From assembly GCA_029953675.1 (NCBI GenBank), contig JAMWBK010000002.1, positions 3,100,001-3,164,000 of the forward strand: 64,000 nt of DNA, in the 5' to 3' direction. The translations under genes were made by a program, and so were the position numbers. This stretch comes from Rhodosorus marinus CCMP1338 (lineage: Eukaryota; Plantae; Rhodophyta). Positions within the stretch are counted from its first letter, which is position 1. Each line of letters opens with the position of its first letter. The notes beneath the pieces were generated by a model that was not told where the DNA came from, searched no databases, and saw only the letters and a program-made list of their open reading frames with translations. Below are positions 1,360 to 63,500 of the stretch, one piece after another.

Positions 1360-2299
1360 ACCAGCTAGACACCTCTGAATGCAGAGAGCCGGAAGTTCCT
1401 TCAGCGAAAGCCCAAAGACAAAGTCAATACAACCTAGGAACCCCTGCTTCGAACCGGACAGTCTTTCACAAATTTACTCTGCGCCAGGCTTCGCATAAGA
1501 TTTGCGCTCAATCTACCTCTGTGAATCCTCCCAAAAGCCTAATAACGGAGAACGTCGCGGACAGCAGTTCCATCCGGGCGACATGCCGACACACTACCCC
1601 AAATAAAAAACCCCCCGCTGACCCATATCAGGACAAAACAAAGCGCATGCCTCAGTCAGAGTTTCCGCAAACCCAAAACAATCATCCAAATTCACCAGAA
1701 GTTCTTCCAAAGCGGAGCCATCTCGATCTTCACTCGTCATTCCATCGAGTCTTCAACGGACCTCCATCCTTCTCACCACAGGACCTGAATTTACTAAGAT
1801 GGATACTAAAAAGTACTACTATGGCAGTAACCTCGATTTTCGGGGTTAAAGAACATTTTTGGACATGTACTAACGATTACACTAAAACGTGTACTACTAT
1901 TCTACTAAGTAGAAATTTGTACTATTTGCTTTTGCTGATGAGTGCGAACGAATGTCTTTGGACAAGGCGTTCCTTTACATCTGGAGCTCATGAGTTTTGT
2001 TCACTAAAAACTATCCTATGAGTGCTACATAATAGGTGGTAAACCACTAACAGAAATGCTGCTTGCTGAGTGACTTCCCGACTTCCCGACGTCAGATCCG
2101 ATCGGGTAGGAACGACTTGGCTGGCAAACGACCTGCTGACCTCCGTCTGGAGGGCGCAGAGATCAGACCAGTTCTTTCAGAGGTGAGCTACCTCTATCCT
2201 GTAGGCTGAGGAAAGAGGGCAAGCGGAGATGACGGGAGTGCATGTCCGGTGTGACCCGACGAACAAGGATGTTGCAGCGAGATATTCTGCGCGATCGTG

Positions 2300-2720
2300 A
2301 TCGGCGCTTGAGATAAAATCAGAAAGTTTGATCCAGAAAGCTGTGTACCACATTCTGAATTTGTGTTCGGATCATTCCAACTTATCACTTGAGGAAAATT
2401 TTCTGCACACACCAAGCCATATCTTGCTTTTGAAATCCATGTCAAAGTGGAGGTCCCCGTGCCCCAACAAACAAGCACTACCTCGAGGCCATCTAACACT
2501 ACAATACTGACCAAATCAGAGCAGCGTACTTTCAGAACAAACCAGCCGCATCCTCCCCAAATGCATGAAGAAGAAGAACTGGGTGGAGAGATACAAAACG
2601 TCAATTTTGGAGGTAGCGTTCATAGAACAATAAGACCTCTCCTCTCCGCTATCTAACGTTACCACTGTGTACGAAACTGGTTGGAAACTATATGCAGTAA
2701 ACCCGTTGTATCCACCCCAG
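2300..2720 (+). mobile_element. Possible decayed pogo/Tc5-type (DDE_1) transposase fragment
   Basis: One frame, with in-frame stops, reads HILNLCSDHSNLSLEENFL..HILLL / LPRGHLTLQY*PNQSSVL / SNVTTVYETGWKLYAVNP. This loosely follows the DDE_1 motif order LLILDxHxSH..LPxxxxxxLQPxDxxxF..NIxxGFxxxGLxPxNP. No TIRs were identified. Confidence 0.3.
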
Positions 2721-2931
2721 CTCGCATGAATGTTGTATCAAACAGCTTCAGGCTACCGATGATGTGAAGGCGAGGGTCGCCGAAGGTACTCATGATTTGG
2801 GGGGAGATTGAATGAGAAGTCAAGATCAGGTCTTCAGAATGACGGCACAAAACTTAGTGAAGAGGAAACAAGCGAATCTATTCGACAAAACTAAGTGACT
2901 GCAGTAGATTATCTATAAGAGTAAGGAGCAT

Positions 2932-3802
2932 ATGATGACCTTTGTGAACGTTTCTGGGAGGGTTTTCAGTCATCGGTGTTCAACGGTAACAGATGACAGA
3001 CGGAGAACGAACGTGAGAGTGCGTCAGAGGTAAGGTAGCTCAAAATCTGGGCTTTCACGTGCAGTTTTTTAATTTTGGCACAACTGATAAAGCTAGCGGT
3101 TCGGGCTAGGAGGGACTTCGGCTTTCCAGAGGCGGGCGAGGGTGAGAAACAGCAGGTCGATGCCTTCCAGAAAGCGCGACAGGATAGTGGTCTTGAAAGG
3201 ACGATATATACGATTGTTCCATTGGATGATAATGGAGTACCCATGGTTCGGGTTTTGATAGTTGGCTCAGCCGAGGGGGATCTAGAGCTCGCAAAGTTGA
3301 TCAAGGACAACCCATCTGTGACTGGTCTTTACTACACATGCGACAGAGGAGAGGCAGTGTGTGATGTCGAGATGAGCAAAGTGGCCAACACCGTACCGGC
3401 CAAATCGTCCGATGAGGAGGCCTGGATTGGGTAGGAATTTAGCACCAGCTCTCCCAAATACACTGTGGGCGGTTCAAAAATCCTCCATGTTTGTACTTGA
3501 TGAGGAGAGGGCCCTCTAACTTTGTGTCCTTGCGTTTTGTGTAACACGGCTTCAGGTTCTGCATTTGGGCCAAAGTAAACATTGTTTTCTTGGGGGCTGG
3601 TAAGCAGGTCTCGAACAGGGACAAAATTGAAAAGAATCTGTCCGAACATGGTGTGACATTCTACGGCTCTGATGTCTCACAAGCCCTTGTCGACGATACA
3701 ATAAGCTTGGACTCCTGCTTGCAAGCACCGATCGAGCAGCTCGAGGAAGCCTTACCGGCCTTGAGACATGCGGCGGAGGAGCTCACTGCAAGAGGTGACT
3801 AG
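2932..3802 (+). CDS. Putative plastid-targeted ~221 aa protein with a divergent PurD/GARS N-terminal (pre-ATP-grasp)-like domain and no ATP-grasp domain
   Basis: Exons 2932-3029, 3110-3430 and 3556-3802 sum to 666 nt in frame. The N-terminus MMTFVNVSGRVFSHR is transit-peptide-like. RVLIVGSAEGDLELAKLIKDNPSV and DEEAWIGFCIWAKVNIVFLG..LSEHGVTFYGSD parallel PurD KVLVIGSGGREHALAWKL and DHEALVAFAKENNIDLVVVG..FEAAGIPVFGP. An alternative last exon via a GT at 3800 is possible. Confidence 0.7.
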
Positions 3803-7315: not shown

Positions 7316-8467
7316 ATGGATCAGGTTGGTTTTGTCGGTGGATTGGGGCTTGCGCCTGCTGGTACGAAAGCTACTGCGAGGACTTGCAGGATGCAGAGGC
7401 CGTCGCGCGTGGCCCCTGCGCATAGGGCCCGTCGGTCTGCTCTGGTGAAGATGTCCGCAGCAAAGGACGCGGCGACAGGAGGGCCAGTGGAAATCAGCAG
7501 CACGGGCGAGGTTCAGAGTACTCAGCAGAGGCTCAGGGTTGGAGGATTCATTGGTCTGTGGTATGTTTTCAACATTGTGTACAACATCTCGAACAAGACA
7601 GTCTTGAACGTCTACCCCTACCCGTGGTTCGTGGCTTGGATTCAGCTTGTCATCGGAGCAGCGTACGCGATATTGGTTTGGGCTACAAGATTGCGAAAAA
7701 TGCCAAATATCAACACGGATCTGATCAAGTCGCTCATTCCAGTCGCGATCTTCCACAACGTCGGTCACGTCGCCACCGTGGTGTCGCTCGGCGCTGTAGC
7801 AGTTTCTTTCACTCATGTGGTCAAAGCTATGGAGCCGTTCGTAAACGTTGTTGCTTCCGCGATCATCCTCAAGTCTGTTTTCCCGATCCCGGTTTACCTG
7901 TCCCTCCTGCCGGTGGTTGGAGGAGTGATCATGGCATCCGTTACCGAGGTGTCCTTCACTTGGATGGGTTTCATGTCAGCAATGACCTCCAACTTTGCTT
8001 TTGTCGGACGTAACATCTATTCGAAGATGGGAATGGCGTCGACCAAGGACGAGAACTTGAACGGTGCGAACCTTTTCGCAGTCATGTCGTGCATCGCCGT
8101 TGTTCTCCTCGCACCTTTCCCGTTCATTATGGAAGGAACGAGTTTTATCACCGGATGGAAAGCCGTAACAAGTGGAGCAGGGGCGGCTATCACTTCTGCT
8201 AAGTTGGCGCAGACGATAGGGATCTCGGGACTTTTCTTCCATATGTACCAAGAGGTTGCGTTCCTCGCCCTTGACAGTGTACATCCGGTTACGCACTCAG
8301 TTGCCAACACAGTGAAGCGAGTTGTCATTATCGTCACTTCGATCATCGTATTCAAGAACCCTGTTACCCAGGCGAACGCGCTCGGATCTGCTATTGCGAT
8401 CGTTGGTGTTTTGCTGTATTCGTTGATCAAGAACTACTATGCCGAGAAGGAAGCTAAGAAGGCATAA
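7316..8467 (+). CDS. TPT: Plastid phosphate translocator (TPT/PPT/GPT family), intronless
   Basis: 383 aa ORF with transit peptide MDQVGFVGGLG. Family motifs: WYVFNIVYNISNK, AVSFTHVVKAMEPF, VHPVTHSVANTVKRVVII and multiple hydrophobic helices. The exact substrate subclass cannot be resolved by eye. Confidence 0.93.
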   Translation: MDQVGFVGGLGLAPAGTKATARTCRMQRPSRVAPAHRARRSALVKMSAAKDAATGGPVEISSTGEVQSTQQRLRVGGFIGLWYVFNIVYNISNKTVLNVYPYPWFVAWIQLVIGAAYAILVWATRLRKMPNINTDLIKSLIPVAIFHNVGHVATVVSLGAVAVSFTHVVKAMEPFVNVVASAIILKSVFPIPVYLSLLPVVGGVIMASVTEVSFTWMGFMSAMTSNFAFVGRNIYSKMGMASTKDENLNGANLFAVMSCIAVVLLAPFPFIMEGTSFITGWKAVTSGAGAAITSAKLAQTIGISGLFFHMYQEVAFLALDSVHPVTHSVANTVKRVVIIVTSIIVFKNPVTQANALGSAIAIVGVLLYSLIKNYYAEKEAKKA

Positions 8468-8943
8468 GCGGCTCCGAGATATCTGGGGGGGATGGAAGAC
8501 ATGGCTCGTCGCTCTGATCATTGGTTGATGCCAAAGAAAATATGAGGGGAGGGCTAACGCTCCCAGCTTTTACCATGCTAAACTGGAGAAGCCGGTCTAA
8601 CGTCATCGTGGCCGGAGTGGAGGACGAAACGTGCAGCTCGAGTTGAACGAATCAACTTTCTTTTCCCAACAGTGAATTTTATTTTTCGAGAAGCAAGTCG
8701 GACCCATTTCCAGGCCTAGCATCGCGAACGAGTAGCTCAGACCCATTCCCAGGCTTCATGCCGAGAACAAGAGAAAACAAATAAACTCCGTTTGGCTCTT
8801 CCGAAGGCGAAGACAGTATCCTTCCTAGCATCTTCCCTGCGCCGAGCGTGATGTCCAGTACGCGGACGCCTAGTTGTCCAACTCGAGAATAACTTATAAC
8901 TCATATACAGCGGTCATCAACAAGCTTTGACGGGGCCGAACGC

Positions 8944-11066
8944 TCATTTCGGATCCCCAGCTTGAGTTCCCGTAAGCGTGAATGTTCCAACTTCCACGAT
9001 CTTCACGGGCACGAGTTTGCCTCGTAGCTCCTCAATGTTGCCCTCAAAGTATGTTACTCTGTTTTTTCTTGTCCTTCCCATAACCTTTGCGGACGTGAAA
9101 TACGCACAAAGGAAACATTCAGCTATAGAATTCATTACAAGGCACGAGCGTATTCTTCCATCTACTGTGCAGAAATCAAGTACCTGCTTCTCATTCCGAG
9201 AGTTCCGTTCCGTGACCAGGACCTCTTCGACTCTTCCCAAATACCTCCGGTTTCGGCTTAGAGAGTCCGTTTCATTGCGACGATTGGCTCTACGTAGTCT
9301 GCTCTCTTTCTCGGAGTCTGAGACCTGATTCTCCATGATTGCACCTGCGGAAGGTTAATGGCGTTAGGGACCAGATTCTTCACTCACCAAAACAATGCGA
9401 GCAGCCCCTGCAGGGCTTACCAGGAGTATTTGGCCTCGGGGAGTAGGCAGCGGTATGGACATGATCGAACTGGATCTCCTCCATCAGATCCAAGGTGTTC
9501 TGGAACTGTTCCTCTGTCTCCCCTGGAAACCCTACAATGGTATCCGCTGTTATCGCCGCATCGGGGATTTCCTCCCGGATCTGCCTGATAACCTCCCTGT
9601 ACCTTTCGACAGTATAGCCTCTGTTCATCGCCTTGAGCACCTCCGTGTCACCGCTCTGGAACGGAACGTTAAACGACTCACACACTTTGCTAAGCTGGCT
9701 GCAAGTTTGTGCAAGATTTTTCGTAAAGTAGCGAGGGTGAGAAGTAGTGAACCTAATACGTTCAATACCATCAACGTCGTGGACTGCGCGCAACAATTCA
9801 GCAAAAGTCACCCTAGGTTTAAGATCCCTCCCGTAGGCATCTGTATTCTGGCCTAACAGCGTAACTTCTCGATACCCTTGCCTGGCTAGCTCTTCAATCT
9901 CAGCTCGAATCGCTTGGGGTGTCCTGCTTTGTTCAACACCTCTCGTATTAGGGACAACGCAATAAGTACACCTTTCGTTGCAACCATAGATAATATTAAC
10001 CCAAGCGGAGACGCCGTCAACTCGAATTGGTTTCGATAAGTCTTCTGTGATATGTGAAGCTTCGGTTGCCACGACCTGATTTCCCTGAGCGACGTCCTGA
10101 AGCAACTCTCCCAAGCGATTCGCGTACTGAGGTCCAATAATGAGGTCAACCTCGGGCACCCGCCGCGCAAGCCTGGATGCCTCCTGCTGAGCAACGCATC
10201 CAGCAACCACAACGGCAATGTTCGGGTAAGTCCACTTTCTCTGCGCGATTGGTCCGAGCTGTGAATAGAGCTTGTGCTCCGCATGCTCTCGTATGGAGCA
10301 TGTGTTGAACACGATTACGTCAGCTTCCTTCATAGTCCTCGCCACCTGCATTCCCATAGCTTCGAGTTCCCCTGCCATTCGCTCAGAGTCCGACTTATTC
10401 ATCTGGCATCCATGGGTTTCGATGAAATACGAAGTCCACTCCTGTTCTTCCCGCTTCACTCTGATTTTACCCAAATTTTGCCCAGTTCGACGGAATGTCC
10501 TCGTTGGTGTCCATGAAGTCAACTCTATCGCCCTTTTCACGTCTTCTACGTAGGCGGCGTGCCAACCAGAGGCTGATTGGGCTTTAAAAACTCCTGAACC
10601 AACCCAAAGCGATTGAGGTCAAAGCTAGTGGTCAGATGTGAACGTGGTTCAGCCCAAACATGAATCGTGTCCGAGCGGGCTAACCTGTGTGTGGATCTGT
10701 GGAGGACACAACATCTACAATCTCTGGAAAAGGAAACGTGCCTTTCGTGTGCCACCCCAGATCTCCACCATTGTGTCTGGAAGCTTCACAAACAGAAATA
10801 CTCTCGGAATACTGGCGTATTGACTCTACACCATTCTTTCGCCCTTCCTCAATCACAAAATCGCAAAGCTCCTCGCTTAAAACCAGCACGTGACGTATCC
10901 TAAACTTATCCTCAGTTTCAGCCAGACCCCTAACACCATCCAACCGACCAGGCAGACTCCCACTCACGTTAATCACCACACACACATTCCCCTTCCTAGC
11001 GGGATCAGCGTAAACGCTCCCTCTTACCCTCCTGAATCCAGCAGATGGCACAAACCCGGCTGCCAT
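8944..11066 (-). CDS. miaB: Plastid-targeted parvulin (PpiC-type PPIase) domain fused to tRNA-2-methylthio-N6-dimethylallyladenosine synthase MiaB, 618 aa
   Basis: Exons 11066-10685, 10593-9421, 9344-9184 and 9084-8944 sum to 1857 nt in frame. MiaB motifs: [34 protein letters not shown] (radical SAM CxxxCxxC) and a C-terminal TRAM domain. Parvulin motifs: [29 protein letters not shown]. The MiaB ORF has no ATG of its own upstream of the UPF0004 domain. Confidence 0.88.
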
Positions 11067-11659
11067 GGTGTCCTCTACAAAACACTACTCCAGAAACCCG
11101 CTTCTAAAAACAAAAAGGAGAAAGAAAAAAAAAACGGAGAAAAAAACTAAATCCAGCTGCTCCACTACATCAACACATCCCTCCTAGATCAGCTCTTACA
11201 GCCAAATACAAAACAAAAACAGAATCCTTTCTCCTAAACGAAAAGACAATGTTTCTGTTTGTCCTCCTAACTCCTCCACCCAAACCTTTCCGCAATTCAT
11301 CCTTCCTCTTCAACTCCAGGCGTTTTGCTTTTATACACATTCCATCGCCGATGTGTTTATCTGTCAACCTGAAAGTCATCCATCGAGATAGGTGGCGCCT
11401 CTCCCCGTTTCGAAATGACCAAAAGAAATCTGACCGTCGTATAATAGAAAAGTCACCTATCTCGACAGTTGACGCACACTCGAACCAATGGATAAACCTA
11501 GGTCGTATTCTTTAATCAGATATCATATCGATATATTTCTGTCCCTGTGAGTGCTAAAATTCAAGACTACGCATTCGTTAGTCTTTTTTTAAAAACAATT
11601 TGATCTTAATCTAGAATTTGGTTGTTGGAAGACGGGGCTGGAAAGGGTTTCGTCTGGTT

Positions 11660-12262
11660 CTACTTTGGTTTCTCATTATGAGCCGTCGACAGGCTGACTG
11701 AAGGTGATTTTTGGTCTACAGTAGCTTCTTGGTCTGTGGATGGATGGTCTTGTTGATCTGGGTCTACTTCTAGAGTCGATGTGTCGATTCTTACGACCTT
11801 CTCGGAGCGTTCTGCAAGGATCGTCTCGATGTTTGAGGGACTGTCACCAAACCATCCAAGATTATCTGCGATGAGATGCCGGTTCTTGCATCCTGGGCAC
11901 TCAACGAGGACAACACCCCGCTCGTACGCACCCTTTGAGAAGCGTTTGACGGCTCGCGTGTTGCATACCTTGCACGTGAACATGATCATCATCAGATCTT
12001 TTCCATGTCTTGTTCCAATGTTCAGTCCTTCGGTTGCTTTGATACCCTCGGTCCCTTTTTGTCCTCCTCCAACTAGGTCCGCCTTAGCATCGCCGCTTCC
12101 TGCTTTCTCTCCGTTCTTGGATAACGTCAGTCTCGACCACTGCAAAGCTCTCGCTCCCAACGAATACTGAGAATATTCTCCTTTCAAGCTCGGTAATCTC
12201 CTAGAAGAGGTCAAAACCCTTCGGGTGAGACCAGCAGCTCGCCACCAGCGATGCCAGCTCAT
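11660..12262 (-). CDS. ZIM17: DNL zinc-finger chaperone (Zim17/Tim15/Hep1 family)
   Basis: [39 protein letters not shown] is the zf-DNL signature. The first ATG at 12262 gives an Arg-rich presequence ([15 protein letters not shown]). Confidence 0.93.
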
Positions 12263-12701
12263 ATCTCTACTAGCCTCAAGAAGAGGCTCGCAAGCCACGC
12301 GCTCTGACTTGCTGTTTGCTAGGCCCGTCAATACCTTTCCGAACGAACTCGTCCCTGTCAGAACTCATAGGCCTTCCCCATTCGAAACCCACCACCAGCA
12401 AAGCATTTCCCGGTGCCTTCGGCGGTAAGGATGACGATCCTTCGCAGTGGACAAGATTCCCGCATGGATAAATACTGGTTTCAGCTAAGGCTTTATACTG
12501 ATCACATCGGTTCCGTGGTTGTGGATGGACTCCCTCTTGCTGTTCACGTTTAAGACATCTTGTTCGACGCTTTAATCTATACAAAAGCTATTTACAATTT
12601 TCATTTCGAGTTGGTTGAAGAGAATCCGTTCGTATCATGAAGTGGAAATAAGAATTAGAAGTTCGAATAATCAAAGGCACTGGTTGGGAATGTCCAATGC
12701 A

Positions 12702-42007: not shown

Positions 42008-45000
42008 ATGGGCCAGAGCAGTAGCCTGGCGGATTTAAAGCGACTGCTCGTCGCCGCTGCTAGAGCAGATGTCATAGGAGATGAGGTTGATATTGGTTGT
42101 GCTCGTGCAACATCAGAGGGTCGATTCCATGTGCAAATAGAAAACCATGTTACGGAGGACCCGATTGTAAGCATCTACACAAGCCAAGGGGATATTTTCC
42201 GTGGCTCTACATCCACTTTGATCGCCAAATCAGCCAAGAACTTGCAGCCGAGAAAAGGGCGACCTCCAAAAATCAATGTTGAGTCGTGGGAGACTTCCCT
42301 CGGAGTATTTAAGGCAGAGGATGACAATGGAGAGACGTGGACAAAATTTTCCGTAATTCTCAGTGAGCTGGACGACGAAGACTTGTACCCTCTTCACTCA
42401 GCCGACTCTGCATCGGACAAGGAAGTGGATGGTGGCGAGGATACGAGCAAGCCAACTGTTAGAACTCCGAACCTAGGCGGTTCTGAGAGTAGATTGAGAC
42501 TCGAGAGCATCGTCTTTTCCACCTTCCCCGCAGTTGGAGATTATGTTGAGATTAGTCCTTCCGGGAAAAGTTCGCTGAAGGGAAGCGCTGGCAAAGTTGT
42601 GAATATCGGTGACCAGTCGAATCCAGAAAAGCGAAGGGTGCAGGTGAGATAGCTTTTGTGTGCTAGGTTTCGTTGCCAAGGTTGGTGCAGCTTGGACTAT
42701 TTCTGAAAGTCGTTCCTCCTCTTCATCACAGCTGCTGATAGGGAACAAGCCAACATGGGTGACCCTTCGATTAGGTGACTTTCGCTTGATTGATGGATCA
42801 CAGGTTCGTGATGAGCAGGCTCGTGATGACCGGGCAACCCCCAAGTTGAGCTTAGATCCTGCACCAAATGAACAGGACAAGCCCTCGCCGGCCATAAGCG
42901 ATGTAAAACTCGATCCAGGAAGACCACAAACTTTGAAGGCAAAATTGATGAAGATGTGGTCGGAGAAGAAGGTTAAGAAGCAGGTCGACCGAGCGCCTGG
43001 AGATACCCAGGTAAGTCCTGACTCCGAAACCGCTCGGGTTTGAATCCTGCGCAGTCGTTCTGTACGAGAAATTGCGAGCAGATGCACTCCCCGACTTGTA
43101 GCGACTTAGAGAACTGACCATGTGATCTCCTCGCAATTGTGCAACTAGGCGACAAGTCCCGGTCCAGTAGAAACTGTCGCGGTGAAAAGGGAGAAAACTG
43201 TTCATAGCGAAGACTCGGCGGCCCAGATGCACAGCAAGCTCGCAGTATCTGACAAGTCCGCGTCGAAGTCCTCCAACTCAACGAAGCGCAAGAAGAAGAA
43301 GCGCGATGTTAGGAGTGCACATAGTCTACAATCTCACAGAAAGGCGGTAGAACCTTCAGAAAAGCCTGCTAGTAGAGGCTCGGACTCCAATTTTCCGGAC
43401 GACAAACGGAGCTCCGATTCAAGTAGCGAGGAATCCTATCTGGAAGACGGTGGATCAGAAAGAGTAGAGCAATGGAGAAGAACCCGAGGATCACCAGAGC
43501 GAGGACGGAAGAAGTCACACGGTCCTACCATCAAGGATGCCGATGAACGGTCCACGAGCGAAAAGGAACCTGCGCGACCAGCACCCAGAAAATCTGAAAA
43601 AAAGAAACCGGTCAGACAGAAGGGATGGAGAGAAATTCGTGGTTTGTTTACCGACGTTGTTGTACAGAAAAACGAAGAATCGGAGAGCGACGAAGAGGAC
43701 TCGGAGAATGAAGAAAGCTCGCCTGAGGAGGCCTCTCCTGTGTTGAGCACTAGCCGCTTACGGAAAGCGAAGCTCAGTAGTACCGAACGTGGGCCTAGGG
43801 GTCGGACGAGGAGAACCGAGGACGCGACTGTTTCGGAAGACGTGGGCAAATCAGCCTCTGTAAGGTCGCGCTCTAGAAGAAGAGAAGAAACGGAGGTTGA
43901 GCCGGAGGCCAGCAGCAAGGCATCCGCGAAGTCAGAGAAGAAAGACGAGGCGAAGAGATCCCCGGATATAAAACGTCCCACTAGAACTCATGGGAAGGTT
44001 ATCGGGAAAGCGGTTGATGCACTTGAGGCGGACGTCAAGGCTACAGGTGATAGTGATGTCCAAAAGATACCTACCAAGCAACCAGGAAAGGGAAGCAAGC
44101 GGACTATTAGGAAACAAAACAACTCTGAGGAGGAGGATGTCTCGCCACCAGGAGAGGTCCGATCCGAGGTGAAAAGCAGCAAGCGACAGAATTCTGGTAC
44201 TGAAAGGGCGGTCACTTATGGCGCAATTGCGTCCGTTGACAGCAAAGAGAATGCCGAGGAGAAAAGCCAGATAGAGACGGCTGCGAAGGGGTCTCCGAAG
44301 GCTGTCAAGCAGGCTGTCAAGGTGCCCAGCCTCAAGCAATTGGCTGAGGAGGACGAGAGTGAGGTGGAACAGAGCTTCATAGAAATCCTTGCTGGATACG
44401 ACTTCAAGGACATCTCGGACAGCATGAGCTTTTTCGGAGACGAGGTGATTTTAGACGTGACTGGCCTCAAAGTCAAGCTTGTAGACTACATTTCCAAGTG
44501 TTGTTTGAAGATTGCGCACCCAGACTCACAGATTGAAGTAGAAGACCAGCTGCCCTTGCTTGGTTCTGACGAGCTGAGCGAGTTCTTGGCCAGTCTGACG
44601 TTCGTCCTGGATGGGTCACTTTCCATCGCCCCGGAATTCTCAAAAAGGTGGTGTAGTAGAAAGGGATTAAACAGCCAAGTCGTAGGGTTCGCGTTGTCGA
44701 TTGTCGACGCGGCTTTGAAAGCGGCGCTGGAGCTGAAAGCGAAGCTGGATGAGAAGAAAGACGTGAAAGATCCGGCGCTTGGAGAAGCTAGCGGCGATCA
44801 GGTTGAGGTTACGTCAACAGGTCCCTTCCAGAACGCCATCAACGCCTTTGTCGTGCTTGTAAACTACCTAGAATACGAGGACAAGACAATCGGAGACGCA
44901 GAAGATGCGGGGCCAGAGGACAGAAAGCTCGCCACAGTGGTGCATCTCGCCGAGAGACCTGAGCTTCTGGAGATGGTATCACCAACGATGACTTTGATGG

Positions 45001-48000
45001 AGCTGCCAAAGCTTAAGGCACTGAAAGGACCCAGTTCGAAGTTGAGGCAATGGGCTTCAGAATATATATTATGTCTCCTCGGTACTCGCGCATTGTCCGA
45101 TGTGGAAAGAAATGACGTCATTCACCGAATCGTTGAGCATGAAAACATTTTTTCGTCCTTTGTGGATGAACTCCAGAAGAGAATGGTGCGGATCGATGAA
45201 CGTGCGAGGGGTACGGATGAAACTGTTGCGGACGTGTTGTACGAGCTGCTTGAAAACAAGGAGTTCCTCATACGGTTAGCTGACCCCGAGGAGAATGAGA
45301 CGAGGGAAAAGCTCGCAGATGCTTTCACCAGCAGTTTCGAAAAGATTGTCTCTGGACGGCCGGCGGGCATTGTCAACAACGAAATCAATTTGAAAGTTCT
45401 CGATGCGGTTACATTGTTCTTCAAGTACGCTTTTCTCAGAGGGCATGTGGTCGGCAATAGTCACCTGCGGTCAAAGTTTATGACAGCGTTTGCAGCGTTA
45501 CTGGCTAGAACGGACGAGATCATAGCTGATGTTACGGGTAAGCGAAGAACAGAGCAGTGCTGGTCAGAATTCATGTAGCTGAGAGTATTGTTGTTGTCCT
45601 TGCATGATGAATTAGGGAACAGCAAGAACCCGGTGAAGATGGATCCTTTCGATGGATACGAAGTTGATGAGATAATAGAGGACGAACTCATTGATGAGGA
45701 CATTGCGTGGTTCCTCTCTATTTCGTTCCGGATCTTCGGTGTGTTGGGTAATCGAATCGGCGGAGGCTCGTTGCTTAGCCATCTCATTGAGAGTCAGTTC
45801 CGGGGAAGGAGAGGTCTAGAGAGGCTCTACACGTTCGCTTGGAAACTGCAGCGAAGCGTGGGGACGGAAAAACTGGGGGAGAAAGACCGAACGCTATTCA
45901 CAGTAGCTTTCACTGCCGTCCAGGAGGCCATGGAGTCTGCTCACTTCTCATCGCGGAGGCAGAATCCGGCCGTAAATGATTGTGAGTCAAATTTGTCAGG
46001 CACTTGCCCTTTGTTTTGGAACGAATAGACTTGCTTGTGAGAACGAGAATAGCATCTCTAAAAATTTGCGGTTTTCGTCATAACCCGTAGCTGCAGACGT
46101 GACAACGAGAAGTGACGGCTACGATGTGCTTGGCATAAGCACATCGGACGGGTCTGATACAGAAATCCCAAGGAAACTGGGGACATTGGAGAAGGTAGAG
46201 CCCATACGATTGAGAAGTCTACTACAATATCCCAAAAGACGTCGTGAATTTGAGGTGGTTGATGCAGAGCTATCTGAGTTCTACCGTGAGGAAATGGAAG
46301 CCGCGTTTATTAGGCTCACCGGCAGCGGGGAGAAACCAGCACCGTTCAAGAGGCTTTCGAAAAATGAGTATCTTCCTGCTGCGAGAAAACTACTCCAAAG
46401 TCAGGGGGAGCATATCATGCAGTGCAACTGCGTCGAGGTATATACTTCTTCGGCCAGCATAGCTTCGAAATTGCTTCAGAGCCCAGTCGTACTGATCGCT
46501 GTATACTTGTTTCACCTCTCTCGCACTTTTTCTGGTACTGCCCCGTAGGTCCCAGGCGCCATGGCGTGCAATGATCATAGGTGTTTGAACCGTGCATCCA
46601 TGTTCGAATGCGACGAACAGCATTGTCAAGCTGGCGAGAGCTGCTCGAATCAGAGGTTCCAGAAACGTCAGTATGTCCCGGTGAAAGTAACAAAGGCTGA
46701 AGGAGGCAAAGGTTGGGGCCTGAAGCCGCTTGAGGACGTCGAGAAGGGCACGTTCGTAATGGAGTATCAAGGCCAAGTAATAGACGAGGATGATTACGAG
46801 CGGCGAAAGAAGAGATATGAAGGAGAGAAAAATTTCTACTTCATGAATCTGACACCGGATTTGTATCTGGATGCATCGAGAAAGGGCAATCTCGCAAGGT
46901 TCATTAATCACTCCTGCGACCCCAACTGCGCTACACAGAAGTGGACCGTCAGCGGGGAGCCTTGTGTCGGAATATTCGCGGTCAAAGGTAAGACGAAAAC
47001 ATCTTTCGAAGCGCTGCTTTCGGTTGCTAATGTGATCACCCCCCTTGCCAATCTGCTCGTTTTTAGATATTCCGAAAGGTTGTGAGATCACTTTCGACTA
47101 CAACATTGAAAGTGGAGCGCGTGGAGAGACCTCAGCTGCTGTGAAGTGCGAGTGTGGAGCACCAAATTGTAAAGTTTGGCTTACGGGCAAGGAAGATACG
47201 CCGGAGATCAGGAAGGCTGCTGAAGAGCAGTATCTGAGGCGTGCGAAGGTTGTTGAGGATCAATTGAAATGGATCAACAACCGCATTGAGCTGAGAGCCC
47301 GAGGCCGGGCGGACGAACCTTCGTCACTCTCTGAAGGCGAGGACATGGACCTTAGCGACGAGAAGCTTTCCACGGGAATGGGCGAGACCGAAGACAATCC
47401 GGAAAACCCACAGGGAAGCCCCTCACGGTCTCCTGGAAAGCGCGATCGGCGTGTTGCGTTCCCGGGTATGTACAGTGGGACGGACGATGTCTTGCCGTCC
47501 ATTCGCATAAAGAAGCGGACCGTCGGCAACGGCCAAGCGAGTCCAGAGTTGACAAAGGTCGAAACTAAGGAGCCGACGCCTTTAGAGTCCATGAAGAAGG
47601 AAGAAACTCCTTTGGAGCTACCGAATAAGGAACTGGCTATCGTTAAACCCGCCACCGCGGGTATTCTGGATGACATGGTTGTGCGAACTGAAATGAAACC
47701 AAAGCCCTCCGAGTTCCCCGCAATAGGGACTACGTCTCAGGGCAGAAAATCAGCATTTGTTGAAACATCCTCAGCTGGCGAGTCTAACCGGGAATCGAAT
47801 ATTGTAGAAAAAACTACTGCAGACTCAATCCCGATAGTACCGCCTGCTCCTCCACCGGTTGTGGAAAGCAAGGATGTGGCTGCACATGCCGGCTTTATCC
47901 GAGTAGATGCTTCTGGAAAAGAGGAATCGTCTCTCGTTTCGGAAGGCACTAAGCTACTGAAGGATGTCATGCGCAATGATGGAAAACCTGACTTCATAGA

Positions 48001-48886
48001 CGAGAGTGACAATAGAGACGCTATGTCGGGAACAATTAAGACTATCAGCGTAAGCGAGTCCAAGGAGGGTTTGCGAGTTCCAGGATCACCGAAACGAGTA
48101 CGGTCCGAAACAAGCGAGCTGAAGGATAGCAACCTGACCTCTGACAGAAAACGTGTATGGCAGACAAGGGATCGATCTCCTGGTCAGCGAAGGGAGTCGC
48201 CACCGTACAAAAGGAGGGAAGTATCCCCGTACGACAGAAGAGAGCTCTCACCATACGAAAGAAGGGAACTCTCACCGTATATCGGACGAGAGGCGTCCCC
48301 GTACAAGAGAAGAGAGCTCTCACCGCGGGAAAGAAGATATCCATCTCCGCGTGAGAGAAGGGAGTCCCCTCCTTATAGAAGTCGCAGGCAGCACCTATCT
48401 CGAGATTCGAGGAGACGCGAGAGCTACTCCTCCAGAGATCGACGCAGGCATCGATCTCATTCATCTTCCAGGTCACGTTCGCGGAGCTATTCAAGCAGCT
48501 CAAGAGGGTCGAACAGAAGGATGCGTACACGCCCGCGGTCCACGTCGCGCTCGCTGTCTCGATCACGTTCGTATTCTCGCTCGAGTTCACGATCAAGCGG
48601 AAGACGCAAGTCGAGGCGTAACCGGTCAAGGTCCCGTACTCCTGTTCCCAGAAGATATCGCGACAGCCCCAGGAGGGGATGGAAAGATAGTGACGATGAC
48701 CACTACAGGCGCTATCGCTCAAGGTACGAATTTAATCCTTCCTGGGTTTGCTCAATGGTCAGGTGACAAAGTGCTTATCCTCGTTTTATGCTACTACAAT
48801 TTAGCCCCAGTCCCCACAGAGAAAGAAGCCCATATGACAGATCTCGTGATTACCGGAGGAGTTACCGGAGGGACCGCTATTATTGA
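42008..48886 (+). CDS. SETD2: SET2/ASH1-type histone H3K36 methyltransferase (AWS-SET-postSET), ~2064 aa
   Basis: Exons 42008-42643, 42732-43010, 43149-45537, 45616-45981, 46091-46437, 46549-46987, 47067-48723 and 48805-48886 sum to 6195 nt in frame. Motifs: AWS CNC..CLNRASMFEC..CSNQRFQK, SET KGWGL..FVMEYQGQVI, ARFINHSCDPNC, EITFDYN, postSET CECGAPNC. The assignment to SETD2 rather than ASH1/NSD is tentative. Confidence 0.85.
48185..48376 (+). repeat. 8 x 24-bp coding tandem repeat, consensus xRRE(L/S)SP(Y/R)
   Basis: QRRESPPY KRREVSPY DRRELSPY ERRELSPY IGREASPY KRRELSPR ERRYPSPR ERRESPPY, read in the SET gene frame. Confidence 0.9.
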
Positions 48887-58572: not shown

Positions 58573-60519
58573 CTATCTCGTATGACTCAACCTCTTCATA
58601 GAAGATGAAGGAGAATGCATCAGCTTCTGCAATGACTCCCAGCCCGACTCAACGCCTTTCGGGAAGTGCGACTGCAAAATAGACATTCTCTTCTTCGTTT
58701 CGTTGTGCGAAAATATCGTCCCGCTTCCAATGAGAAACAAAATCCAATGACCAACCCGGACTTTCCCCAAACAAAACACTGATGTGAGCAGAAGCTGTAC
58801 GCCCAACGATATATACGTCATCGACTCATTAAACTTTCCTGCCTTCATGCTCGACAAAAAATATGCCACAAGCAACCTTTCCCCACCATTCAGACGAACT
58901 ATGAAAGCCTCTGCTTTCCCACTGCTTGTTAGTAGAGTAAACGGCAGCACAGTTTGCGCCAAACCAACTATCCTGTTGCTACTGCTAAAGAAGCATATCT
59001 GCAACAGGAATATGTACCAAAGACAACTCAACGACCATGTGGGCAAAATTCCGGCGTCCACACTGTCCAGTACAGCAGGCAGAAAATACATAAATGCAAA
59101 ACACGCCACAGCATGAATGTCCAGCAGAACTCCAGCCACAGCGAACATGTGCCAGCGTACAATTGCCTTCAGAATGGTTCCCATGTTGTAAACAACAGAA
59201 GACATGACGGACAGCAAGACTAAAACCGAACCGACTATCCAATTGCTCTCGCTATTCCACCCAGAGACGATATTCACACCCTCACCCTGCGCCTTACCCT
59301 CAACCACCTTTCCTTCAACCTCTGAGTTTTGACTTCGCTTCAAACTCTTTGAACACGTCTTCCCGTCCTTCTTCTTCTCCACGCTCGTGTGACTAGTCCC
59401 TTCTTCCCCAACCTTGCCTATGACTGGGCCTGCAATACTGTTTCCATTTCCGTGCGAGTCCTTCCTTCCCCTTGCACTGTGGCCTCCCTTCTCAAACGAC
59501 CTGCCAAACCTCTCGGCGGCGTTCTCTAGCTTCCTTGCCCACTCTTGTCTATGAGCTTCAACTCTACTCGCCGCATCCGCGATTATTATGTCCTGCTGCC
59601 AGTCGGTAAGCGTATCCACCATACCTTGTTTCGCTTTCTTCCCGGAGATCTCTGTCGGGGAGTCCTTGGAAGCATTAGCTTTCTTTGACTTGCGCTTACT
59701 TTTCTGAGATTCTTTCGGTTTCTCTGGAGCAATGGTGGAGTCACCGGGCTCCTCGTGTCCCTTCTCCAACTCGCTCTTTGTCTCAGCCACTGGTTCCTCA
59801 TGCTTCGCCGACTGTCGTTGGTCTTCCTTGGTCAAGTCCTTGGTATGCTCCTTCTCGACATCCTTCGATGTGGAAGACGCTCGTGCTGTGGGCTTCTTCT
59901 GACCAGCCAAACGCAGCCCAGCAGGGTATTGCCGGTTGGGTGTGCCTGCGCGTCGGTCGCTGTTTGACCTAGGTACTGCTCTAGATCCATAAGAGGTGTA
60001 CTGAATAGTCTCACCAGTTAATTCGTCTCTTATGTGCCGTGTTTCAGAGCAGATCTTGAGTCGTGGTTCCCGGTTAGGCCTCTTATGGTCAGAATTAAAC
60101 GGTTTGCGGGAATCCCCTTGAGCTTTTTTCCTCGTATAAACCACAGCATCCGTACGCGGAAGCTCGCTGTAGACTTTCTCTAGAGATTGATCCTCCGCAC
60201 TCAATGGAGAAGTAACAGCACCTCCAAAATCCAAAGTTCTCCAGCTTGAAAATGCAGAGTCCACAACCGAGGAGAGTGCAGTATTTCCATCGGATCGATG
60301 CGCCGCAACCTTCCAACCGTTTGATACTTCGCTCAAGCTTAACCCGACGCCTTTTCCTGGACTCCCCGGTATACTGAGCACCTCGTCACTTTTAACGTGC
60401 TCGCTTGGAACCCCGTTCTCCACGGCCGACTTGTACTTTCTTAGATTTTTCGACAAGGGAAACTCGTCATTGTCGTCGTCCGTCAAGTCGGCCGGAAGAT
60501 AATAGTACTCCTCATCCAT
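58573..60519 (-). CDS. Uncharacterised 648 aa protein: long charged or disordered N-terminus plus a C-terminal multi-pass membrane domain, intronless
   Basis: 654-codon open frame with the first ATG at 60519 (MDEEYYYLPADL). The last ~230 aa contain several hydrophobic segments. Confidence 0.85.
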   Translation of the reverse strand: MDEEYYYLPADLTDDDNDEFPLSKNLRKYKSAVENGVPSEHVKSDEVLSIPGSPGKGVGLSLSEVSNGWKVAAHRSDGNTALSSVVDSAFSSWRTLDFGGAVTSPLSAEDQSLEKVYSELPRTDAVVYTRKKAQGDSRKPFNSDHKRPNREPRLKICSETRHIRDELTGETIQYTSYGSRAVPRSNSDRRAGTPNRQYPAGLRLAGQKKPTARASSTSKDVEKEHTKDLTKEDQRQSAKHEEPVAETKSELEKGHEEPGDSTIAPEKPKESQKSKRKSKKANASKDSPTEISGKKAKQGMVDTLTDWQQDIIIADAASRVEAHRQEWARKLENAAERFGRSFEKGGHSARGRKDSHGNGNSIAGPVIGKVGEEGTSHTSVEKKKDGKTCSKSLKRSQNSEVEGKVVEGKAQGEGVNIVSGWNSESNWIVGSVLVLLSVMSSVVYNMGTILKAIVRWHMFAVAGVLLDIHAVACFAFMYFLPAVLDSVDAGILPTWSLSCLWYIFLLQICFFSSSNRIVGLAQTVLPFTLLTSSGKAEAFIVRLNGGERLLVAYFLSSMKAGKFNESMTYISLGVQLLLTSVFCLGKVRVGHWILFLIGSGTIFSHNETKKRMSILQSHFPKGVESGWESLQKLMHSPSSSMKRLSHTR

Positions 60520-63500
60520 CTCGCCTCTTTCCTTCACCTTCCCTCACCGAAATCTGCAGCCGATGTTAAATACAAAGTTCTCATCTTCTAAAGCAGCTTC
60601 CAGGCGCACAACCATCCGCCCGTCGCGCTCAACCGCTGACGACTCTTTCGCTTCTCCAAAGGTTTTAGATCTAAACACTCACAGCACACCACAAATCAAG
60701 CGCAAGCCTCAATGGAGGCTGTTACCACACAGTCCAGCTCCTCCCGAAAAATCAAGCCGCTTTTTCCTCTCTCAACTCTCGCACGTCCGAAAGCGAACCC
60801 TCCGAACGCTTGCCTCTCTCCAAGATCTTCCCTTCCCCCTACCTTTACCATCCCCGTCAAACCCCAAAATCCTAAAAGCTACCATCTTCCCCACTCCCCC
60901 CTCCGCCCCGCACCTTTTTCCCGGATTGAGCAATGTGTCGTCCCTAACCCCTCGCCAAACGTCCTGCGTGGATGCGCAGATGTAATATTTTGTCTATTTT
61001 TTCGCTTGGGAGGACAACAGTAGATTTATGAAACCCCCGTTCGCAGAAAAAAAATGCTCTCTTTTCCACCTCTCAAGGAGATCTTGACGATAATTTTTCT
61101 GTCCTATACCCCGTCTGAAAAAACGCCACCACCATAGATATTTCTAAAAAACGAAATCTGCATCCAGGTAATGAGGTCTTTTACTTATTTCATATAATTT
61201 GAATTTTGAAACCGTTTTTCGGGCTCGCATGAAGGCGATAACTGACATGGCCCTTCAAGCCGCTGCGACGGCACTTCAGACCCTGCTTTCTTTTTTTCCT
61301 AGATGTTTGCCTCCCGCCCGGTTTCGGGGCCTTCATTGGTCAAAACAATAGATAGTCGATTGTAAGTGGATTGCTTGTTATATGTACTGCTCAATAATTT
61401 ATGGAGAAGGGGCTTCGTTAACATATTATATATATAAATGTATTTTAAATTCAATTTCTGTGCGCTTGAATAGTTTTTGTTTTGTTGGGAGATTTTTTGG
61501 CTGTAAGGTCAAGGACTGATCGTTCAATACCCACATCCCCCAACCCCTGTGTTCGAAGAAACCCGAAGTTTGCTTATATCAGATTTACATGAAATAAAAA
61601 AGATTTGCTGCGTGGCACGCACAATGGAAAACCCCCTGCAGGTCTATGCAACCGTTCTAGACATCATGCGGGGAATGCTGTTTTGGGGAATATTATTTAT
61701 CCAGTCAAACCCTTGGCAAAATCTGTGAGTCGCGAAGCACGATACGTGGAAAGAAATTGCGGAGCCGGACCAGCCATGAAGCCGCACATTGGTCATTAAG
61801 AGCCACTTTCCCAGCACAATTTTACACCGCATCCAAAAGTTGCTTTTGCGTTGTTCAAACGGCTTTTCACCGTTTTCACGAGTTTTTTCTGCTTTCTTGA
61901 GCATTTTGATGTCTAACGGAAGAAAACTAGAATATTGTTGCCATTTTCTTTAGCAACTAAGGCATCCAGTTCCGAGCGCAGAGGGGGGTAAGTACAATTT
62001 TCTTTGAGGTCGCACCCCCGCAACAATACAACTTTCTGTGTACTTATGTATTTACTGGAAATAACTTGGAATGATTTCTATTGATAGGGGTTAGAATGAG
62101 ACATGGAATTTCATCGACGTGGAAGGGGGGTATTAAATTACTAAAATTTAGATTTTTAAGAAAATAGTTCACTTACAACATAATGCTGCCTCTCATGCCC
62201 ACAGGGCGTAGGTGTCATATCTATTTTCGCATCGGAGAACAATGAATGGAGAGTTGAGAGACTCAAATGTACTTTGGCATCTCAAAAATGTTTCTGTATG
62301 TTCTTCATCCCAGAGAAACACTCAAGAATATGAATGCAAAAAAGGAATGCCCTCGAAGGATCCACTATCTTCGCCCCTTCCACGCTCTGCCTCAAAACCT
62401 TGACCGGCAGCAACTATATTTAGGACTAAGGACAACGTGCATTTATTCTGCCTACGTTCACGGCGTGGAATCGGCGGATTTCCCACACGAAAGCCTATAA
62501 GGATCCCTCCCCCAGTGTCTTCCACCCCGTCTGCACGCCTGCGCACCTGCTAGAACACCAACAACCGCTTATTCAGAGCTAAATAGCCTGGGCCATCGGG
62601 TCGTTCGATTTAGATTTATGCGACATGATGGTACCATGACCCGCTTGATTCGGAGATCTCCCAAAATCCCGGCAAGCCCTTAAATGCCTTAGACGAGACT
62701 CAATCATTTTAGAGTGAAAGTTCGAAGGTACTGATTGGTGGGAATTGCGAGTCTCCTCTGGGTTCAATCATTATCTAAACCCTTTTCCGATAGAGCAGAT
62801 CTTGTTACCAGATAGCGCGACGGATTTATCAAGCCTCTGCAAGCCCTGTGTGTTTCCGCTCTGCAGCTCTCCTGATTGGCGAAGCTATGGAGACTTCGGC
62901 GCAGTGACTTGGTCAGTCTTGTTGTGTTGAGTGCGTTGTAGGGTCCACTGATATTCCTCATCATCAATTGTCGTTGTTCAGTGCTGGACCAGCACGTATG
63001 TTGGATTCCATATCTGAAAGGTTGAGTACGCGCGTCAGCGGATCGAGGACCACGGAAATAGCATGTTGCCTTGGAAAGGTTAGTAGCCCCTCTAGCAGGG
63101 CCGACCTCGATTCGCCCTGTCTAAGGAGACGGCGCCGTGTTCACTCGTTGCATGTACGGCCAGGTTGTTCCTTCACCATACGCCCAACGGCAGAGCCCTC
63201 TCGTATCTCCTAATCGCTTGGCCCGATGTTGAAAAACAGAGCTTGCCCCATACCGGTCAATTCGGGTGCTACATCGATATCCAGAGTACCTGACTGTTTT
63301 CGAGCTTCTTGGTGTGTCACCACCACGTGATCGCATTGTCTATTTTCCTGATGCCTTCAGAAGAAACTCGCCTCATGCGTCATCCGGCCTGGTGGGAACG
63401 GGTCAGCCCGTAATCTAATGAATATGCAAACTACGTGTTTCCACGGCCACTTTCTTGCTAGCAATGCATGGCCTCTCCTCAGTCGACAACTGGATCAATC

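Follow-up and report, generated by a model that had tools for sequence, protein, structure and literature searches.

In-frame fusion of a parvulin domain to a MiaB-type methylthiotransferase in the red alga Rhodosorus marinus and in other algae with red-lineage plastids

The 64,000-nucleotide stretch analysed here (the window) covers positions 3,100,001 to 3,164,000 of contig JAMWBK010000002.1 of Rhodosorus marinus CCMP1338 and is part of the nuclear genome assembly of this red alga, GCA_029953675.1 (PMC10250338). At positions 8944–11066 its minus strand carries a gene in which a domain of the parvulin family of peptidyl-prolyl isomerases (PPIases) is followed, in the same reading frame, by a complete MiaB-type tRNA methylthiotransferase. 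Translation of the minus strand of 8700–11400 gave four exons (11066–10685, 10593–9421, 9344–9184 and 9084–8944) with a coding sequence of 1857 nt and a product of 618 aa; the three introns, of 91, 76 and 99 nt, are all bounded by GT..AG. The GenBank annotation of the assembly lists a 618-residue product across the identical 2123-base span. We are highly confident that 8944–11066 is a single nuclear gene encoding a true in-frame parvulin–MiaB fusion. Such a fusion had been proposed from the sequence alone (the original prediction), and the four-exon model, a transcript from a second strain and the relatives described below all bear it out.

Exon 1 (10685–11066) contains the start codon, a presequence (approximately residues 1–49) and the parvulin domain from strand 1 to helix 4 (residues 54–127, together with the first nucleotide of codon 128). 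It ends in ...CACACAG and is followed by intron 1 (10594–10684, 91 nt, GTTAGC...GTTCAG), which closes with ...GGTTCAG before the GA that opens exon 2; splicing preserves the frame. Exon 2 (9421–10593) encodes parvulin strands 3 and 4, the linker, the UPF0004 domain and the Radical SAM domain. Its first segment (10535–10593) supplies residues 128–147, including Ser134 and His139, and ends in a VEDV motif; the basic linker (10430–10534, residues 148–182) comes next, with a predicted local distance difference test score (pLDDT) of 42–61 in the AlphaFold2 model. The UPF0004, or methylthiotransferase N-terminal, domain (10133–10429, residues 183–281) contains C190, C226 and C260, and the Radical SAM domain (9485–10000, residues 326–497) contains the C332-x3-C336-x2-C339 motif. 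Intron 2 (9345–9420, 76 nt, GTAAGC...CCGCAG) separates this exon from exon 3 (9184–9344, residues 519–572), which includes the start of the TRAM domain, and intron 3 (9085–9183, 99 nt, GTACTT...GCAAAG) separates exon 3 from exon 4 (8944–9084), which encodes the remainder of TRAM (residues 551–612 as a whole) and the TGA stop.

Neither half of the gene reads as a unit of its own. Unspliced, the parvulin open reading frame (ORF) meets a stop two codons inside intron 1, and the MiaB frame of exon 2 has no ATG 5′ of GCQMN, the motif with the first auxiliary-cluster cysteine, so MiaB is not translatable by itself. The incomplete parvulin ORF, the missing ATG and the 91-nt intron at 10684–10594 had all been predicted, and translation of exons 1 and 2 agrees on each. 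The accompanying picture of an intron that joins the two domains needs one refinement: the splice is in frame and the end of the parvulin does lie in the MiaB frame, but the intron sits inside the parvulin domain, not between parvulin and MiaB, and exon 2 encodes the last two parvulin strands. Because exon 2 alone runs through these strands, the linker and the start of MiaB in one uninterrupted frame, the fusion would stand even if the splice prediction were wrong.

Transcript data nevertheless speak to the splicing as well. The original prediction had named a transcript across the first junction as a check, and one exists: an MMETSP transcriptome protein from another R. marinus strain (UniRef A0A7S2ZBX3, here P0003) is also 618 aa long, aligns to our gene model with 94% identity and 0 gaps, and crosses all three splice junctions. 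The first, between DPHTG and VFKA, is identical in the two strains, and those of intron 2 (NTPG before A) and intron 3 (NEKQ before VMGRT) are likewise backed by P0003. A second R. marinus MMETSP ORF (P0004, 396 aa) starts with MNKSD within GCQMN. We considered it as an independent MiaB start, which the original prediction had set down, together with truncated or differently spliced parvulin transcripts, as evidence that would count against a fusion, and rejected it: since the ORF begins past the first cluster cysteine and runs on into intron 3, it represents an incompletely spliced isoform, and we found no independent MiaB start. The MMETSP data thus include incompletely spliced transcripts of this gene, with intron 3 retained in P0004. 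In L001, a relative whose eukaryotic contig also contains a histone H2A gene, there is no intron at the site of intron 1, and parvulin, linker and UPF0004 share an uninterrupted 355-aa ORF.

These observations also bear on the suspicion that the gene model is an artefact, with adjacent parvulin and MiaB genes joined by a chance GT..AG intron. The parvulin ORF that terminates just within intron 1 and the MMETSP ORF that begins inside MiaB would both fit such an accident, but exon 2 encodes parvulin strands 3 and 4, linker and MiaB unbroken, P0003 passes all three junctions without gaps, the fusion is encoded by uninterrupted ORFs in relatives, and the short MMETSP ORF has the start and the intron 3 read-through of an incompletely spliced transcript. 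We therefore reject separate genes or an annotation chimera on the strength of exon 2, P0003 and L001, and regard the artefact as extremely improbable.

The MiaB part comprises the C-terminal 436 residues (183–618) and has complete UPF0004, Radical_SAM and TRAM domains, which score 102.6 bits (PF00919, residues 183–281), 108.4 bits (PF04055, 326–497) and 39.4 bits against a cutoff of 21 (PF01938, 551–612) in Pfam. The protein also scores 454.1 bits, against a cutoff of 355.3, on NCBIfam TIGR01574, the MiaB equivalog model for the tRNA-i6A37 methylthiotransferase. An alignment with fused and cyanobacterial MiaBs shows no variation at any of the six cluster cysteines (C190, C226, C260, C332, C336 and C339). 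AlphaFold2, which the original prediction had proposed to consult, gave both a parvulin fold and a MiaB fold; the full-length model has a pLDDT of 79.6 and a predicted template modelling score of 0.73, and its MiaB part superimposes on crystal structures of MiaB (7MJW and 7MJZ) with target-normalised template modelling scores (TM-scores) of 0.91–0.93 (the Foldseek match to 7MJZ has E = 1.3e-46). In a full-length search the closest unfused relatives were cyanobacterial MiaBs, at 63–65% identity. The assignment of this module as a cyanobacterial-type tRNA-i6A37 methylthiotransferase is thus well supported by sequence and model, and it is predicted to form ms2i6A37. MiaB belongs to the radical-SAM enzymes, contains two [4Fe-4S] clusters and converts N6-isopentenyladenosine at position 37 of tRNAs (i6A37) to its 2-methylthio derivative (ms2i6A37).

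Compared with bacterial and cyanobacterial MiaB (structures 7MJV–7MJZ, Bacteroides uniformis), the R. marinus protein has the same UPF0004–radical SAM–TRAM order and all six cluster cysteines, but it begins with about 180 extra residues, made up of presequence, parvulin and basic linker, and its gene is nuclear and intron-bearing. The eukaryotic enzymes CDKAL1 and CDK5RAP1, the latter mitochondrial, are likewise radical-SAM methylthiotransferases for tRNA position 37, and they belong to other clades. Huang and Gogarten (2008) set CDK5RAP1/CDKAL1 apart from a cyanobacterial-derived miaB copy of Plantae, for which no parvulin domain was mentioned (PMC2530860); the cyanobacterial affinity of the R. 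marinus MiaB is consistent with that copy.

The extra domain at the N-terminus (residues 54–147) is predicted to adopt a parvulin fold. The full-length AlphaFold2 model is folded from residue 54 onward and has strands at residues 129–134 and 137–147, and the model of the isolated domain (pLDDT 82) has the strand and helix order of a parvulin. When this model was compared with the PDB, all of the top 50 matches were parvulins, with 6xd8_A giving the best target TM-score (0.87, with a root mean square deviation of 1.7 A). The sequences agree: a profile built from 17 fused N-termini matched solved parvulins in the order SurA (1.6e-16), PrsA (3e-14), PpiD (1e-10), Par14 (5e-8), PpiC (9e-8) and Pin1 (1e-4), and the parvulin domains of orthologues lie above the Pfam cutoffs for PF00639 and PF13616 (25.9–40.1 bits on PF00639). 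By these comparisons the domain is of the bacterial type, with SurA, PrsA and PpiC better matches than Pin1. With the bacterial parvulins (E. coli PpiC/Par10 and the domains of PrsA and SurA) it shares the fold, a four-stranded sheet against helices, as well as the His/Cys/Ser-Thr/His network and GGDLG; it differs from them in being fused to an enzyme, neither free-standing nor set in a chaperone scaffold, and in having a last strand that ends in VEDV.

Alignment with a canonical 94-aa PpiC from a bacterial locus showed that His59, Cys93, GGDLG, Ser134 and His139 are retained, and the same positions stand out across the family. Among 58 fused parvulin–MiaB proteins (window numbering), His59 is found in 51, His139 in 53, and Ser or Thr at residue 134 in 50; at residue 93, 52 have Cys and the other 6 Asp. 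Ser91, Gly101 and Gly104 are each present in 58/58, Trp105 in 56/58, and Asp145, part of the family-specific VEDV motif, in 57/58. A Cys/Asp–His–His–Ser/Thr network, whose residues we take to correspond to those so numbered in Pin1 and Par14, is therefore retained in about 90% of the fused proteins, R. marinus included. At the position of residue 93, active parvulins alternate between Cys (Pin1, Par10) and Asp (Par14).

The N-terminus of the protein looks like that of a red-plastid protein. Residues 1–49 are disordered in the AlphaFold2 model (pLDDT <50) and begin MAAGFVPS...; P0003 starts with the same MAxGFVPS, and inspection of relatives by eye revealed either red-type starts (MAxGFVPS, MAFV.., MATFVPS) or a signal peptide followed by Phe. 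A Phe near the N-terminus and a signal peptide followed by Phe are the targeting patterns of primary and secondary red plastids, respectively. Given the cyanobacterial-type MiaB part, the red-type N-terminus and the secondary-plastid-like relatives with a signal peptide and then Phe, the R. marinus protein is likely to be destined for the plastid. The linker is variable in sequence but not in character: across the family its median length is 36.5 aa, about 20% of it is Lys plus Arg, and it is net positive in 57/58 proteins.

The original prediction took this architecture to be specific to one lineage, a view that did not survive a search for relatives. Rotamase, UPF0004, Radical_SAM and TRAM occur together in many proteins found with the full-length query: in red algae (Rhodosorus, Galdieria phlegrea, Galdieria partita and Compsopogon), in the eustigmatophyte Nannochloropsis gaditana, in the brown algae Cladosiphon and Nemacystus, and in the chromerids Vitrella and Chromera, as well as in many metagenome and transcriptome sequences. 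An exhaustive search with a hidden Markov model (HMM), which covered 1.84 billion representatives, added to these: its top-150 list contained 145 representatives that had not come up before, and at least 52 of these, representing clusters of environmental sequences, have a parvulin domain followed by the start of MiaB. Word-indexed searches with the N-terminus as query, whether as a single sequence or as a profile, returned few relatives, and both the full-length query and the exhaustive HMM search were necessary. The fusion is thus conserved across red algae and algae with red plastids and is not the peculiarity of one lineage. One of these proteins, that of Galdieria phlegrea (P0006, 819 aa), has about 190 additional C-terminal residues with a match to ribosomal protein S7 (PF00177); this is probably a merged gene model.

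We found no parvulin–MiaB fusion among the matches listed from 600 miaB-start loci of bacterial and archaeal genomes, and no parvulin gene near miaB of Pleurocapsa PCC 7327. Inheritance of the fusion from a cyanobacterial operon is therefore unsupported. The simplest account of these two negative results is an event in a eukaryote early in the red lineage, and from the sequences we infer that the fusion arose once there and was carried with red plastids into stramenopiles and chromerids. A parvulin gene does lie near miaB at three of the 600 loci, among the matches listed. These come from related metagenome-assembled genomes of Candidatus Gastranaerophilales (L006, at 1590–3276, L007 and L008), in which a stand-alone 94-aa ppiC is located 70 bp from miaB, divergent from it and unfused.

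What the parvulin contributes is less certain than that it is there. The reading we favor, to which we assign a probability of roughly 35%, is that it serves as a tethered isomerase or holdase that aids the maturation of MiaB. In such a scheme the nuclear-encoded protein would be directed to the plastid, where its MiaB would modify the tRNAs for codons that begin with U. The SurA/PrsA/PpiC-like parvulin, tethered to MiaB by the flexible basic linker of some 35 residues, could act as a prolyl isomerase or holdase on the imported, unfolded MiaB or on a partner at the same site, and its action would leave MiaB, or the partner, in a state competent to accept its iron-sulfur (Fe-S) clusters. The original prediction had put forward folding, cluster loading and partner recruitment, which likewise stand as candidate roles. 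As a secondary possibility, parvulin and basic linker together may add a binding surface for tRNA or for partner proteins. In published pull-downs, MiaB of E. coli was recovered together with the cyclophilin PpiB, and in smaller amounts when an active-site variant was used (PMC7353009); by analogy this hints, weakly but independently, that MiaB may be a PPIase client.

Several observations weigh against this reading. The parvulin domain of the window protein alone is a sub-threshold match to Rotamase, at 17.8–19.2 bits against a Pfam gathering cutoff of 21.7 (the sister-strain domain in P0003 reaches 21.1), and in place of the pocket Phe of the "TQF" motif of bacterial parvulins it has Ser136, with mostly Arg at that position in the family. 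This replacement, and the retention of both histidines, the cysteine and GGDLG alongside it, had been correctly read in the original prediction. Galdieria-type sequences (P0006 and P0014, and the Galdieria-like P0008) have Gln, Asp and Leu at His59, Cys93 and His139, respectively, and those of Compsopogon (P0007 and P0123) have lost both histidines and have a deletion of the Cys-bearing helix region, yet all keep the domain. Catalysis thus seems dispensable in some lineages, which favors a structural or binding role, and the value of the domain is probably structural in part. In a manual count over the P0003 alignment, the parvulin part also appears to have diverged more rapidly between the two R. 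marinus strains than the MiaB part.

These same points invite a different reading, possible though one we hold to only tentatively, in which the parvulin no longer isomerises and persists for the sake of structure, docking or spacing; it might, for instance, stabilise UPF0004 or offer a docking site to ferredoxin, Fe-S delivery factors, ribosomes or MiaA. Retention of the domain in Galdieria and Compsopogon after loss of the catalytic residues would follow naturally from it, as would the low Pfam score and the Ser in the pocket of the window domain, and the near-invariant VEDV motif lies at the edge of the domain beside the linker, outside the active site. The parvulin domains of SurA and PpiD are themselves chiefly non-catalytic chaperone modules. 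Harder to reconcile with a purely structural domain is the complete Cys/Asp–His–His–Ser/Thr network in about 90% of members, including R. marinus, and the alternation of Cys with Asp within it, which is the pattern of active parvulins. If the pressure on the domain came instead from RNA, with parvulin and basic linker forming an extra tRNA- or RNA-binding arm that raises affinity or alters the selection of plastid tRNAs in the manner of Par14, one would expect the positive charge seen throughout the linkers, and such an arm would be a plausible addition to an enzyme whose TRAM domain already binds tRNA; bacterial MiaB works without one, however, and conservation within the parvulin is concentrated at the peptide-binding active site rather than on a basic surface. 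We consider this arm quite unlikely.

The near-constant cysteine raises yet another idea, that Cys93 carries out sulfur or redox chemistry, either as a persulfide carrier that rebuilds the sacrificial auxiliary cluster or as a redox switch. Its presence in 52/58 members and the position of the domain, about 45 residues upstream of C190, the first auxiliary-cluster cysteine, are compatible with this, and plants offer a parallel in PAR3/STR12, a chloroplast fusion of a parvulin and a sulfurtransferase, and in the redox-sensitive parvulin cysteine of PIN1At (PMC8716364). A persulfide carrier could tolerate neither the Asp found in six members nor the loss of the segment in Compsopogon, so the Cys-or-Asp alternation at residue 93 argues against that role, and Pfam found no rhodanese or other sulfur-transfer signature in the window protein; we therefore think this chemistry very improbable. 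A broader, "Rosetta stone" interpretation, in which the fusion betrays a general coupling of parvulin-type isomerases with Fe-S or sulfur-inserting enzymes of plastids, strikes us as unlikely. Under it, MiaB would depend on a catalytically active parvulin for its maturation or regulation, and the parvulin could isomerise a specific proline that gates the loading or repair of the auxiliary cluster or could sense redox state via Cys93; the plant parvulin–rhodanese protein and the bacterial contacts between PPIase and MiaB would then, by analogy, be instances of the same partnership.

The closest described analogue of the R. marinus protein is the chloroplast parvulin–rhodanese protein PAR3/STR12 (PMC8716364), and the comparison with it that was drawn in the original prediction is valid. 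Arabidopsis PAR3/STR12 is a plastid-targeted parvulin joined to a sulfur-metabolism domain in a photosynthetic eukaryote (PMC8716364), as the fusion described here would be; unlike it, PAR3/STR12 belongs to the green lineage and has rhodanese as the partner instead of MiaB, and the R. marinus protein has no Pfam match to a rhodanese domain. As to whether the parvulin–MiaB architecture is new, the earlier suggestion that it was undescribed is right for the literature searched and wrong for the databases. Full-text searches pairing a parvulin-type PPIase with a MiaB-type enzyme turned up no publication on the fusion, whether descriptive or experimental, and a paper on P. falciparum MiaB does not mention domain architecture. 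Automatic annotation has nonetheless already placed it in GenBank, UniProt, IMG and EukProt: UniProt names the R. marinus protein A0A7S2ZBX3 "Peptidylprolyl isomerase", and IMG entries are labelled "UPF0004/PPIC-type PPIASE domain". The fusion is real, conserved and uncharacterised, built of two familiar modules in an architecture that is already visible in databases, and the gain from recognising it is correspondingly moderate.

With each turnover, MiaB-type enzymes consume an Fe-S cluster or have to rebuild it, and their maturation and maintenance in cells are not yet settled matters. A fusion maintained over such a long time in red algae, stramenopiles and chromerids implies that parvulin and MiaB work together, and the small domain offers a concrete handle on MiaB maturation. 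It would also be a second plastid parvulin tied to sulfur-related chemistry, after plant PAR3/STR12, and could serve as a simple architectural marker of red-lineage plastid proteomes.

Elsewhere in the window, three long ORFs, identified with bacterial start rules, lie at 43182–45578 (+), 47045–48766 (+) and 58573–60537 (−) and encode 798, 573 and 654 aa, respectively; none has a Pfam match at E <= 0.001. Upstream of the parvulin–MiaB gene, the 223-aa product of positions 11660–12331 (−) contains a zinc finger of the DNL type (PF05180, 104.8 bits), a family that we take to comprise the organellar Hsp70 escort proteins. Downstream, the single-exon gene at 7316–8467 (+) belongs to the triose-phosphate/phosphate translocator family (PF03151, 346 bits), and its product of 383 aa carries an N-terminal extension. 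This gene is convergent with the parvulin–MiaB gene, and about 475 bp separate the two stop codons.

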